A stretch of 64,000 nucleotides of DNA from Macrostomum hystrix (taxonomy: Eukaryota > Animalia > Platyhelminthes): positions 496,001 to 560,000 of the forward strand of contig CATNEN010000009.1 in assembly GCA_950097015.1 (NCBI GenBank), read 5' to 3'. This document shows positions 21,676 through 61,604 of the stretch, piece after piece. Position numbers and translations under genes: made by a program. The notes beneath the pieces were generated by a model. The model was not told the origin of the DNA, searched no databases, and was given only the letters and a program-made list of their open reading frames with translations. The number at the start of each line of letters is the position of its first letter. Position 1 is the first letter of the stretch.

Positions 21676-24600
21676 CTACGCGGCGGCCGTGTCGCTGTCC
21701 GATCCGCGCTCCCCCACCCGGACCGCCAAATCCAAGTCCGCAGCCTTCTCGTAGCTTCTTAGGCGTGGAAGCGACAGGCAGAACAGAAACTGTAGAAGGC
21801 ATTCAGGGCTGCATTACCATTATCAGAATGAGAGCCAGCAGCAGTCATGCAACACTCGCCATCATGAGCAGAATGAGAGCCAGCAGCAGTCATGCAACAC
21901 TCGCCATCATGAGCAGAATGAGAGCCAGCAGCAGTCATGCAACACTCGCCATCATGAGCAGAATGAGAGCCAGCAGCATTCATGCAACACTCGCCATCAT
22001 GAGCAGAATGAGAGCCAGCAGCATTCATGAAACACTCGCCATCATGAGCAGAATGAGAGCCAGCAGCATTCATGAAACACTCGCCATCATGAGCAGAATG
22101 AGAGCCAGCAGCAGTCATGCAACACTCGCCATCATGAGCAGAATGAGAGCCAGCAGCATTCATGAAACACTCGCCATCATGAGCAGAATGAGAGCCAGCA
22201 GCAGTCATGCAACACTCGCCATCATGAGCAGAATGAGAGCCAGCAGCAGTCATGCAACACTCGCCATCATGAGCAGAATGAGAGCCAGCAGCAGTCATGC
22301 AACACTCGCCATCATGAGCAGAATGAGAGCCAGCAGCAGCAGTCATGCAACACTCGCCATCATGAGCAGAATGAGAGCCAGCAGCAGCAGTCATGCAACA
22401 CTCGCCATCATGAGCAGAATGAGAGCCAGCAGCAGTCATGCAACACTCGCCATCATGAGCAGAATGAGAGCCAGCAGCAGTCATGCAACACTCGCCATCA
22501 TGAGCAGAATGAGAGCCAGCAGCAGTCATGCAACACTCGCCATCATGAGCAGAATGAGAGCCAGCAGCAGTCATGCAACACTCGCCATCATGAGCAGAAT
22601 GAGAGCCAGCAGCAGTCATGCAACACTCGCCATCATGAGCAGAATGAGAGCCAGCAGCAGTCATGCAACACTCGCCATCATGAGCAGAATGAGAGCCAGC
22701 AGCAGTCATGCAACACTCGCCATCATGAGCAGAATGAGAGCCAGCAGCAGTCATGCAACACTCGCCATCATGAGCAGAATGAGAGCCAGCAGCATTCATG
22801 CAACACTCGCCATCATGAGCAGAATGAGAGCCAGCAGCATTCATGAAACACTCGCCATCATGAGCAGAATGAGAGCCAGCAGCATTCATGAAACACTCGC
22901 CATCATGAGCAGAATGAGAGCCAGCAGCAGTCATGCAACACTCGCCATCATGAGCAGAATGAGAGCCAGCAGCATTCATGAAACACTCGCCATCATGAGC
23001 AGAATGAGAGCCAGCAGCAGTCATGCAACACTCGCCATCATGAGCAGAATGAGAGCCAGCAGCAGTCATGCAACACTCGCCATCATGAGCAGAATGAGAG
23101 CCAGCAGCAGTCATGCAACACTCGCCATCATGAGCAGAATGAGAGCCAGCAGCAGCAGTCATGCAACACTCGCCATCATGAGCAGAATGAGAGCCAGCAG
23201 CAGCAGTCATGCAACACTCGCCATCATGAGCAGAATGAGAGCCAGCAGCAGTCATGCAACACTCGCCATCATGAGCAGAATGAGAGCCAGCAGCAGTCAT
23301 GCAACACTCGCCATCATGAGCAGAATGAGAGCCAGCAGCAGTCATGCAACACTCGCCATCATGAGCAGAATGAGAGCCAGCAGCAGTCATGCAACACTCG
23401 CCATCATGAGCAGAATGAGAGCCAGCAGCAGTCATGCAACACTCGCCATCATGAGCAGAATGAGAGCCAGCAGCATTCATGAAACACTCGCCATCATGAG
23501 CAGAATGAGAGCCAGCAGCAGTCATGCAACACTCGCCATCATGAGCAGAATGAGAGCCAGCAGCAGTCATGCAACACTCGCCATCATGAGCAGAATGAGA
23601 GCCAGCAGCAGTCATGCAACACTCGCCATCATGAGCAGAATGAGAGCCAGCAGCAGTCATGCAACACTCGCCATCATGAGCAGAATGAGAGCCAGCAGCA
23701 GTCATGCAACACTCGCCATCATGAGCAGAATGAGAGCCAGCAGCAGTCATGCAACACTCGCCATCATGAGCAGAATGAGAGTCAGCAGCAGTCATGCAAC
23801 ACTCGCCATCATGAGCAGAATGAGAGCCAGCAGCAGTCATGCAACACTCGCCATCATGAGCAGAATGAGAGCCAGCAGCAGTCATGCAACACTCGCCATC
23901 ATGAGCAGAATGAGAGCCAGCAGCAGTCATGCAACACTCGCCATCATGAGCAGAATGAGAGCCAGCAGCAGTCATGCAACACTCGCCATCATGAGCAGAA
24001 TGAGAGCCAGCAGCAGTCATGCAACACTCACCATCATGAGCAGAATGGGAGCCAGCAGCAGTCATGCAACACTCACCATCATGAGCAGAATGAGAGCCAG
24101 CAGCAGTCATGCAACACTCACCATCATGAGCAGAATGAGAGCCAGCAGCAGTCATGCAACACTCACCATCATGAGCAGAATGGGAGCCAGCAGCATTCAT
24201 GCAACACTCACCATCATGAGCAGAATGAGAGCCAGCAGCAGTCATGCAACACTCGCCATCATGAGCAGAATGAGAGCCAGCAGCAGTCATGCAACACTCG
24301 CCATCATGAGCAGAATGAGAGCCAGCAGCAGTCATGCAACACTCGCCATCATGAGCAGAATGAGAGCCAGCAGCAGTCATGCAACACTCGCCATCATGAG
24401 CAGAATGAGAGCCAGCAGCATTCATGAAACACTCGCCATCATGAGCAGAATGAGAGCCAGCAGCAGTCATGCAACACTCGCCATCATGAGCAGAATGAGA
24501 GCCAGCAGCAGTCATGCAACACTCGCCATCATGAGCAGAATGAGAGCCAGCAGCAGTCATGCAACACTCGCCATCATGAGCAGAATGAGAGCCAGCAGCA

Positions 24601-59900: not shown

Positions 59901-61604
59901 CCAACAGCTACCAGGCCCTGACTCCACCCACCCTACAGGCTGACCAACAGCTACCAGACCCTGACTCCACCCACCCCACAGGCTGACCAACAGCTACCAG
60001 ACCCTGTTTTGGTCGCTGTTTGGCGTGACCAATAGGCGTGACGTCATCATCCAGTCTGCCTCGCCGACCGTTAGCAGCAGCTCTTCAAGCTTCGGCGAAG
60101 GCAGAACAACGGAGGTGGTGGCCGAGCTCATGCTGCTTATCTACCACTTCGTGGCGATCATCGTGCTGGTTAACATGCTGATCGCCATGATGTCCAGCAG
60201 CTTCCAGAATATTCAGGTATGAATCTGCGGGTCAACTTGCCTTTTGTTTGTCTCAGTTCCAATCTCCATCAAACAAAACATACCATACTGACTTTTGCGA
60301 CGGTCTACCACCTGTCCTTGGTGGCCCCTCATCATTCTCCGGTTCCGGCAGACAGTGGCGGCCGCCATCCATGCAGCCAGGTGACTGAGCTCATATCCAC
60401 AAGCGGCTGGCAGTTAGCGGAGAAACCAAAGCTGAAGCCGTCAAAAGCTTGGCTCTTTGTTTAGGCCCCGCCGACCCTTAATGACCTCATAAAATGTGCG
60501 TTTTTACCTAACACACCTGGCATTGAACAGCTGGCATTGAACAGCTGGCGTGACGACCTGCTCTGGAGCTCATTAATGCATAAATTATGCAGCTGCATTC
60601 CCTGTGTGAGGAGTCGTGTGAGAGGCAGGGAAACCTTTGCGCCCCGCAAAAGTGCGGCCCACACGATCCGAAATGAATTTTGCAAATCAGGAAAATCAGG
60701 AAAATTGGGCGCCTCATCAGCTGGACCGAAATCAAATTTTACTCCCCATCTCTCTTAGGATCTGAGATTGCTCAGCCTCTAAAACTGGCCTTACCGCCGG
60801 TTCCGAGAAGCAGCAATCGGAAGTCTCCGGGGTCTCCGAGGGTTCACGGATAACTGAAGCTGCAGCTGCGGCCTTATTATGGCTACCTGCTGAATATTAC
60901 TAAGATCAGGAATAAGCTAAAACTTGAGCTTTAACAGTGGCGGGATTTTAAAAGTACATCTCGCTCTTCTGTACCAAGTCGCGTAATTTTAGTCGCAGGT
61001 AAAAATAGAATGGCTGGCTGGCAGCTCGCTGGTGTTTTACGAGTATCAGTCGGCAGGAGCGCAGCCGGGCAGAGATTAGGGCCCGGCCGCATCTGGATGG
61101 CAGGTCGAGTGTCTACGGCGTGGGGTGGGCGCCAGCTTAAGGACTCATCATTTCCTCATCTGGGCCGAGTAGAGGCAAGCGCAGGCTGGTTGGATGGGAG
61201 GCGAAAGCTGATCCTCGTGTTGGGCAATGAGCTCAGCGACCTTTCTAGACATTGTAGCCGGTCTCGTCGGGTTCCAGGACCTCTCACTCACGAATGCAGT
61301 CCTGAGTTATTCTAGTGTCGCATTGTGAGTCATCCTCATCACGCACCCTCCTGCGACCGCCCTCGCACTACAGAACCACGCAGACATTGAGTGGAAGTTC
61401 GCGCGTAGCAAGCTGTGGATGGGCTACTTCGATGAAGGCTGCACCCTGCCGCCACCGTTCAACACCATTGTGTCGCCGAAGTCCATCTTCTATGCCGTCA
61501 GGAGTCTTGTCCGGTGCTGCTGCCGAAGGGGCCGAAACGGCACCGACCAGACACTGTCGAAGAAGACCGAGAGCTCCAGGGCTTCTGTGGCGGCAGCAGC
61601 CAAG
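56943..61604 (+). CDS. TRPC: Canonical TRP (TRPC) cation channel, continuing past exon 4
   Basis: Exons 56943-58260, 58417-58861, 59982-60216 and 61374-61604 join in frame. They give ankyrin repeats, [38 protein letters not shown], the pore LFWSLFG, S6 LVNMLIAMM and the TRP box EWKFAR. The C-terminal exons are not fully in the window. Confidence 0.95.
59473..60005. repeat. 43-bp repeat, 12 copies, spanning the TRPC exon 3 acceptor
   Basis: ACTCCACCCACCCCACAG-GCTGACCAACAGCTACCAGACCCTG. AG ends at 59509 through 59981 at 43-nt spacing, with one 42-nt unit. Confidence 0.96.

Follow-up and report, generated by a model that had tools for sequence, protein, structure and literature searches.

Four minisatellites in a 64-kb window of the Macrostomum hystrix genome (GCA_950097015.1, contig CATNEN010000009.1, positions 496,001 to 560,000; all positions below are counted from the first nucleotide of the window) were found to consist of tandem units that each carry a splice site together with the adjoining exon edge. 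Two of these arrays span donor sites of an MFS-family transporter gene, in introns 9 and 4, and the other two span acceptor sites, in a FoxJ-like forkhead gene and in a TRPC channel gene. Both MFS donor arrays were spliced at the first, exon-adjacent copy, and use of the last copy is predicted for the acceptor arrays. The array of MFS intron 9 has an orthologous counterpart in Macrostomum lignano, that of intron 4 is a lineage-specific gain, and the repeat units are private to their arrays. We consider it probable, at about 0.6, that junction-spanning minisatellites arose from local tandem duplications that by chance took in the edge of an exon together with the splice site there.

Splicing at the exon-adjacent copy in both MFS donor arrays

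Tandem arrays were detected across the window with Tandem Repeats Finder (TRF). Read contigs (k = 31) covering positions 25200-28040 were taken from one DNA run (X1), which served as a control, and from three runs behaving as RNA (X2, X5, and X6); the latter were regarded as RNA because they contained GT-AG joints that were absent from the DNA run. The RNA contigs delimited MFS exons 5 to 9 (Table 1), and the spliced coding sequence of the gene translates to 461 amino acids. A Pfam search with single MFS exons gave no hit; the gene was identified through its M. lignano ortholog P0004 (466 amino acids, 87% identity in a search with exon 5), which carries the Pfam domain MFS_1.

Exon 9 ends at 25652 and is joined to exon 10 at 21789, and the intron between them begins with GC (ATGATG/GCGAGT; slashes mark splice junctions). 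In the three RNA runs, the loose contig end at 25652 ran on into the start of exon 10, and one X6 contig bridged unique exon 9 sequence straight to exon 10. In X2 and X5, contigs broke at this donor because exon 9 and the repeat unit share 30 nt. The depth of the X5 exon 10 piece (17.4, versus 18.8 for the exon contig) agrees with the exon 9-exon 10 joint, as does the annotated M. lignano protein (LILLMM/VLFCLS). Each 45-bp unit combines 29 nt from the end of exon 9 with 16 nt of intron including the donor, and read-through meets an in-frame stop in each unit. Phase-equivalent sites number 75 GCGAGT and 10 GTGAGT, with 74 further exact ATGATG/GCGAGT copies lying beyond the authentic donor and the nearest decoy ∼40 nt from the acceptor. 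The authentic GC donor was used ahead of 74 GC and 10 stronger GT decoys. The last, diverged unit (21790-21840, minus strand) also holds a canonical donor, ATAATG/GTAATG, only 28 nt from the acceptor, which is probably too close for use.

Exon 4, which ends at 29429, is joined to exon 5 at 27667, and the donor of the intervening intron is the first GT. In the three RNA runs, contigs with a loose end at 27668 extended into sequence unique to the end of exon 4 (GGCCTCGTCATC). Here the 25-bp unit comprises ∼13 nt of the exon 4 edge and 12 nt of intron, giving 64 GT(G/A)AGT sites in the intron, with 57 copies of CATCA/GTGAGT. In the two units that follow the real donor (29354-29428, minus strand), GT is changed to CT (CATCG/CTGAGT), so that the nearest decoys are disabled; later units keep GTGAGT.

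At both arrays, the flanking exons were joined in RNA contigs without a retained unit, and these joints were missing from the DNA run. RNA depth inside the array was ∼5 to 8% of exon depth per copy, as unspliced pre-mRNA would give. The assembled RNA contained only the product of the exon-adjacent donor, which describes the dominant isoform, contigs being blind to forms that are rare or degraded by nonsense-mediated decay (NMD).

Long perfect arrays are hard to assemble, and the DNA run X1 may share its sample with the assembly, so we also considered that the arrays had been wrongly collapsed or expanded, or that the junctions had been miscalled. This is scarcely credible: depth of short-read DNA contigs in the arrays was 17 to 60 times unique depth, which argues against assembly inflation, DNA contigs crossed both array borders, RNA joints at both MFS donors fell exactly at the predicted junctions, and the independent M. 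lignano assembly contains a homologous array in three gene copies.

Acceptor arrays in the FoxJ-like and TRPC genes

The forkhead gene encodes a Pfam Forkhead domain in exon 1, and the array lies in its last intron. Each 42-bp unit is made of 11 nt of intron end (TCCACTCTTAG) and 31 nt of exon start. The phase-1 donor combined with the last CTCTTAG/ACACTG acceptor (47135/47136) gives an open frame to the native stop. Since one unit is 41 nt long, the first 7 of the 12 such acceptors lead to a premature stop and only the last 5 keep the frame, with 14 residues added by each. A homologous-protein search with the last exon returned nothing.

The TRPC gene encodes TRP_2, ankyrin, and Ion_trans domains, with the Pfam Ion_trans match on the pore exon that adjoins the array. 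Exon 2 ends at 58861 with AC/GTGAGT, and the frame continues across the junction as AC/G. The 43-bp unit joins 18 nt of intron end to 25 nt from the start of the pore exon, and a CTGAC branch-point-like motif is formed where units meet. Only the last of 12 acceptors (59981/59982) keeps the frame open. The M. lignano TRPC proteins P0045 and P0165 start the pore exon at the same place (junction NDGFAT/), and a search with this exon returned 50%-identical genomic open reading frames (P0001 to P0003) that share the exon start. Because M. lignano proteins and distant relatives agree on this boundary, the exon-derived part of the unit represents ancestral coding sequence and not an exonized repeat. 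Use of the last acceptor is thus predicted in both genes, by reading frame in the FoxJ-like gene and by reading frame plus the M. lignano ortholog protein in the TRPC gene. P0045 and P0165 show a 17-residue difference where exon 2 ends (GLNQL/LTNSY in one of them; counterpart in the window, 58810-58861), which suggests an alternative donor or a difference in annotation just upstream of the intron that bears the array here.

A first-pass annotation of this window, made from the sequence alone, had described all four units as a splice site plus exon edge, continuous with the real junction. TRF placed all four arrays in this way, with the junctions themselves located by RNA in the MFS gene and by reading frame in the FoxJ-like and TRPC genes. 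Several of its other statements held as well: the nonrepeat part of the intron is short in three of the four cases, TRPC being the exception; three further arrays start close to a donor (MFS introns 2 and 5 and the TRPC 86-bp repeat; Table 1); and, by counts in all four arrays, most alternative sites lead to a stop or a frameshift. Two of the outcomes that it had named as refuting its view, that the real junctions lie elsewhere or that the arrays are artifacts, are countered for the MFS arrays by the RNA joints and the DNA contigs described above.

The intron 9 array is shared with M. lignano

P0004 is encoded at three loci of the M. lignano assembly GCA_002269645.1, in the gene order SelS-RPL24-MFS-ATG8 also seen in the window. 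Across the complete MFS gene, the proteins are 87% identical and four-fold sites differ at 0.50 (Jukes-Cantor distance, ∼0.8); with orthologous introns that mostly do not align, this marks the window as coming from a macrostomid other than M. lignano. The M. lignano gene spans 4.8 to 4.9 kb and the M. hystrix gene 9.8 kb, and the positions of all nine introns coincide; the MFS introns have therefore only been lengthened, not created. M. lignano introns 4, 6, and 8 measure 71, 73, and 77 nt, and array-free MFS introns of M. hystrix 77, 91, 103, and, in one case, 466 nt. As M. lignano intron 4 lacks an array, the array in this intron is lineage specific; the intron measures 71 nt there and 1,761 nt here.

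Intron 9 of M. lignano carries a junction-spanning 43-bp array, in whose unit the final 29 nt of exon 9 are followed by 14 nt of intron starting with GTGAGT. It counts 16.1, 19.1, and 19.1 copies in the three gene copies, versus ∼85 in M. hystrix. The arrays of both species have the same two unit breakpoints and align at 82% over ∼700 nt. For comparison, seven of the other eight MFS intron pairs gave no hit, and intron 7 gave a single 28-nt match. We read the two intron 9 arrays as one ancestral array that would have persisted and been homogenized in each lineage; independent origin at the slippage-prone, CTG-rich end of the exon is possible.

In both species, the decoys carry the exon codon of their own species (GCT here and TCC in M. 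lignano). Units vary ∼10 times less in their exon-derived 29 nt than in their intron-derived part, and between species the exon part differs at 3/29 positions and the intron part at ∼7/16. The second donor base is T/C polymorphic in both arrays (21824-25680; L001:14001-14689 in M. lignano): GT makes up 13% here, with GC as the majority form including the functional copy, and GC makes up ∼20% in M. lignano, where GT is the majority. The GC form of the repeated donor creates a CpG.

These features raise the question of whether the decoy arrays are selected regulators that titrate splicing factors, or that send a copy-number-dependent fraction of transcripts to NMD and so tune output. Retention of the intron 9 array across ∼0.8 substitutions per four-fold site, over which the other introns have become essentially unalignable, would fit such a role, as would the conservation of the exon-derived decoy part with its low diversity within the array and the fact that nearly all decoys lead to a stop or a frameshift. 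Copy number, however, appears free to vary (16, 19, 19, and 85), with no sign of constraint; the intron 4 array is missing in M. lignano, and the M. lignano intron 3 array is missing here; conservation of the exon-like part is equally expected from homogenization with a first copy that is selected at the protein level; and the RNA signal inside the arrays is what unspliced pre-mRNA would give. On balance, we regard a selected regulatory role as improbable.

Within the M. lignano MFS gene, arrays are present in introns 2, 3, 5, and 9, and only the last spans a junction. The wholly intronic private arrays of this species (introns 2, 3, and 5 and an ATG8 intron) start 19 to 330 nt from the donor. 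The one in the last intron of the ATG8/GABARAP gene (26 bp, 22 copies; L001:15837-16482) has no equivalent in the orthologous gene here and is a lineage-specific gain.

Private minisatellites make up 30% of the window

In total, TRF reported 19 substantial minisatellites with periods of 14 to 58 bp and up to 85 copies, which cover 19.3 kb of the 64 kb (30%). About 12 of the 19 are intergenic, at a density per kilobase of nonarray DNA similar to that elsewhere. The FoxJ-TRPC spacer, which served as a control, is ∼65% minisatellite and holds at least six unrelated private arrays nearly back to back, with no open reading frame with homology seen between 47700 and 56029; the arrays are thus not confined to junctions. 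No 14-mer of the 19 array units was found elsewhere within the window, and at the three M. lignano loci examined only the 45-bp unit had matches, solely at the orthologous array. From the absence of unit 14-mers elsewhere in the window, it follows that each array is private and locally made, without origin from a dispersed element. Intron filler derived from transposons or introners was rejected, as no dispersed unit copies were present in the window or at the three M. lignano loci.

Table 1. Positions of the arrays, their host introns and genes, and further features of the window
Feature	Position	Strand	Remarks
MFS-family transporter gene, 10 coding exons	21676-31517	minus	RNA contig joints and loose ends; tblastn of M. 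lignano P0004
MFS exons 1 to 5	31448-31517, 30581-30704, 29652-29779, 29429-29548, 27380-27667	minus	
MFS exons 6 to 10	26753-26827, 26445-26661, 25859-25978, 25652-25781, 21676-21789	minus	
MFS intron 9, GC-AG, 3,862 nt	21790-25651	minus	Only 34 nt (3' end) nonrepeat
45-bp array, 85.4 copies (∼85 units)	21824-25680	minus	TRF; starts 29 nt inside exon 9
MFS intron 4, GT-AG, 1,761 nt	27668-29428	minus	80 nt (3' end) nonrepeat
25-bp array, ∼68 units	27748-29446	minus	TRF; starts ∼18 nt inside exon 4
25-bp array in MFS intron 2	29880-30567	minus	TRF; starts 13 nt past donor
32-bp array in MFS intron 5	26899-27342	minus	TRF and RNA contigs; starts 37 nt past donor
Last intron of FoxJ-like forkhead gene (predicted)	46556-47135	plus	Donor G/GTAAGC at 46555/46556; last acceptor AG at 47134-47135; 108 nt nonrepeat
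42-bp array, 12.1 copies	46664-47169	plus	TRF
TRPC intron 2, GT-AG, 1,120 nt (predicted)	58862-59981	plus	612 nt (5' end) nonrepeat
43-bp array, 12.4 copies	59474-60006	plus	TRF
TRPC 86-bp repeat	61650-61810		Roughly 40 nt past donor, as estimated from tblastn exon end
At least 6 different private minisatellites (50, 22, 36, 42, 14, 54, and 30 bp)	47700-56029		FoxJ-TRPC spacer
Multi-exon gene	38.9-41.4 kb	minus	M. lignano counterpart with weak DUF4764 hit
Ribosomal protein eL24 gene	33515-33991	minus	Apparently intronless here and in M. lignano (153-amino-acid call)

Besides the MFS transporter gene (minus strand), the forkhead gene, and the TRPC channel gene, the window contains PAN/lectin paralogs, a coiled-coil gene, a GABARAP/ATG8 gene, and a SelS-like gene. 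For the eL24 protein, the best-matching cluster is from Platyhelminthes. Two spacers hold tandem repeats in both species. Between SelS and RPL24, a 151-bp repeat of 2.7 copies (34218-34615) has a counterpart of 220 bp and 2.2 copies in the same syntenic place in M. lignano (L001:6484-6975), and the spacer between SelS and the multi-exon gene contains a large private array in each, with unrelated units (58 bp, 27 copies, 36487-38066, versus 31 bp, 28 copies, L001:3858-4728). A reverse-transcriptase-like open reading frame fragment lies among the lectin genes (7686-8085), and a 100-amino-acid open reading frame beside the ATG8 gene (20582-20884) resembles, by eye, a Myb/MADF-type DNA-binding domain.

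Junction-spanning arrays in short introns

The first-pass annotation had also proposed that the four junction-spanning cases reflect inflation of small introns by a process that nucleates at splice junctions. The inflation is borne out: with each array collapsed to one unit, the six intron-touching arrays of the three genes leave ancestral introns of 51, 92, 140, 133, 118, and 635 nt, the last being TRPC and the others (51 to 140 nt) belonging to the MFS and FoxJ-like genes. A process nucleating at junctions is not required, given that 30% of the window is private minisatellite, intergenic DNA included, and given the outcome of a geometry-aware null model. In this model, the same six arrays were each reduced to a single unit, and the seed was given a uniform chance of falling at any position other than the wholly exonic ones; 2.2 to 2.65 of the 6 arrays were expected to span a junction versus 4 observed, with P (≥4) of 0.10 to 0.20. 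At some 19 arrays per window, chance alone would in any case yield close to one spanning array in a window.

We therefore favor the view that the arrays are products of chance and of a selective filter. A local tandem duplication of 25 to 45 bp would happen to take in an exon edge with its splice site, and the duplicated seed would be amplified and homogenized by slippage or unequal exchange, in a genome that appears to make and keep private minisatellites at an extreme rate, intergenic as well as intronic. Because ancestral introns were short (∼50 to 140 nt) and seeds measure 25 to 45 bp, many intron-touching seeds would overlap a junction. Selection would remove duplications lying wholly inside exons, and junction-spanning seeds would be tolerated, since splicing takes place at the copy next to the exon (the first donor or the last acceptor) and the mRNA stays the same. 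Once established, an array could persist for long, evolving in concert with its functional first copy; homogenization with a first copy under protein-level selection would also explain why the exon-like part of the unit is conserved.

Several observations weigh against this view. A uniform null model, in which 19 seeds fall on 26 to 34 kb of noncoding DNA with 50 to 90 junctions (ranges used in place of a full exon annotation), predicts 0.9 to 1.9 spanning arrays versus 4 observed (∼2- to 4-fold; nominal P, 0.01 to 0.11), a P value that is optimistic because the window was flagged post hoc for this very pattern. Each of the four MFS arrays starts either on the donor side of its junction or a short way past it (at −29, −18, +13, and +37 relative to the donor). 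In both species, deeply diverged as they are, the intron 9 array occupies one and the same junction, which could mean a hotspot or selection. The sample is tiny, with n = 6 intron arrays, and intron 9 itself cannot be fully phased with k = 31 contigs, the X6 contig alone bridging it.

The first three of these points are what a mutational process biased to splice junctions would produce, for instance breaks or slippage at donor regions that are bound by U1 or prone to R-loops, coupled to transcription or splicing. The array in MFS intron 5 could be added to them: judged by eye, its unit looks donor derived, resembling the donor-proximal start of the orthologous intron, and the array may be a decayed donor-spanning one. 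The excess is not significant, however, once intron length is counted; arrays are similarly dense in intergenic DNA; those in M. lignano introns 2 and 3 and the ATG8 intron start 43 to 330 nt from the donor; two of the four spanning arrays sit at acceptors, so that no single type of site is favored; and the choice of the window was post hoc. We consider a junction-biased process unlikely, though less so than a regulatory role, and retain chance duplication in short introns as the preferred explanation.

Discussion

Arrays of this kind are already known from the human F7 gene, where the first unit of a 37-bp variable-number tandem repeat in intron 7 holds the exon-intron boundary and splicing is confined to the most upstream donor (Borensztajn et al., 2006; PMC1557585). 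This first-donor choice was shown experimentally, and even pseudosites that exceeded the authentic donor in strength failed to compete with it (PMC1557585). The resemblance lies in several identical 5' pseudosites downstream of a boundary-bearing first unit (PMC1557585). In the window, the four arrays are likewise head-to-tail and intronic, with periods of 45, 25, 42, and 43 bp, 12 to 85 copies, and 93 to 97% matches in TRF. Their terminal unit contains the boundary according to RNA (MFS), ortholog protein and frame (TRPC), or frame alone (FoxJ-like), and it is accompanied by near-identical pseudosites, including 11 further acceptor copies in each of the two acceptor arrays. F7 intron 7 has 5 to 9 copies in one gene, whereas here 64 to 86 donor copies extend over 1.7 to 3.9 kb (PMC1557585). 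What is new is this scale, with up to 85 decoys over 3.9 kb, the authentic GC site placed before stronger GT decoys, the acceptor-side arrays, the occurrence of several cases within 64 kb, and an array common to two deeply diverged species, across ∼0.8 substitutions per four-fold site.

A minisatellite in exon 2 of human IFI6 (6-16) is said to supply multiple splice donors (Turri et al., 1995). It would resemble the present arrays in that a splice donor at the edge of an exon forms part of the tandem unit; it differs in that several donors are reportedly used, giving protein variants, and that the unit is reportedly 12 nt long and in frame.

Intron gain by tandem genomic duplication, as in potato RdRp, creates a new intron from exon sequence (PMC4974935). 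As described there, splice signals are duplicated and the duplication is neutralized by splicing, which recalls the arrays reported here (PMC4974935); this class was rejected, since M. lignano has introns at all nine MFS positions. The human spl-TRs, tandem repeats in introns that show an association between their length and splicing, are defined statistically and are mostly not built of the splice site itself (PMC10078293). Recursive-splicing (ratchet) sites were also rejected, as no unit has an AG directly before GT (YAG/GTRAGT): the unit junctions are ATGATG/GCGAGT, CATCA/GTGAGT (overlapping CAG then TGAGTG), CTTAG/ACACTG, and CACAG/GCTGAC. For the genus itself, the M. lignano genome paper puts tandem and simple repeats at 15% of the genome, and the M. 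cliftonense/M. hystrix genome paper defers repeat content to later work. Among searchable papers, including these two queried for repeat and intron terms in the text available, none was found that links Macrostomum with minisatellites at splice sites.

The arrays amount to natural experiments on how the spliceosome picks one site among many identical ones. That the GC donor of MFS intron 9 is used agrees with selection in 5'-to-3' order or on a first-come basis and speaks against simple rules of strength or proximity; the acceptor arrays pose the opposite problem, as there the last copy must win. RNA interference works in M. lignano. This species can also be made transgenic (PMC5730564). Together, the two tools make copy number, decoy strength, and NMD dependence directly testable.

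A bolder proposition, which we hold to be doubtful, is that junction-biased or actively maintained tandem amplification in macrostomid flatworms builds long-lived decoy arrays that coevolve with the exon edge; such arrays could drive change of the real site, as from GT to GC in MFS intron 9, and set the yield of productive mRNA. The data show how short introns grow longer in a genome very heavily loaded with minisatellites, and that concerted evolution of an array with a selected exon edge can continue through deep divergence.

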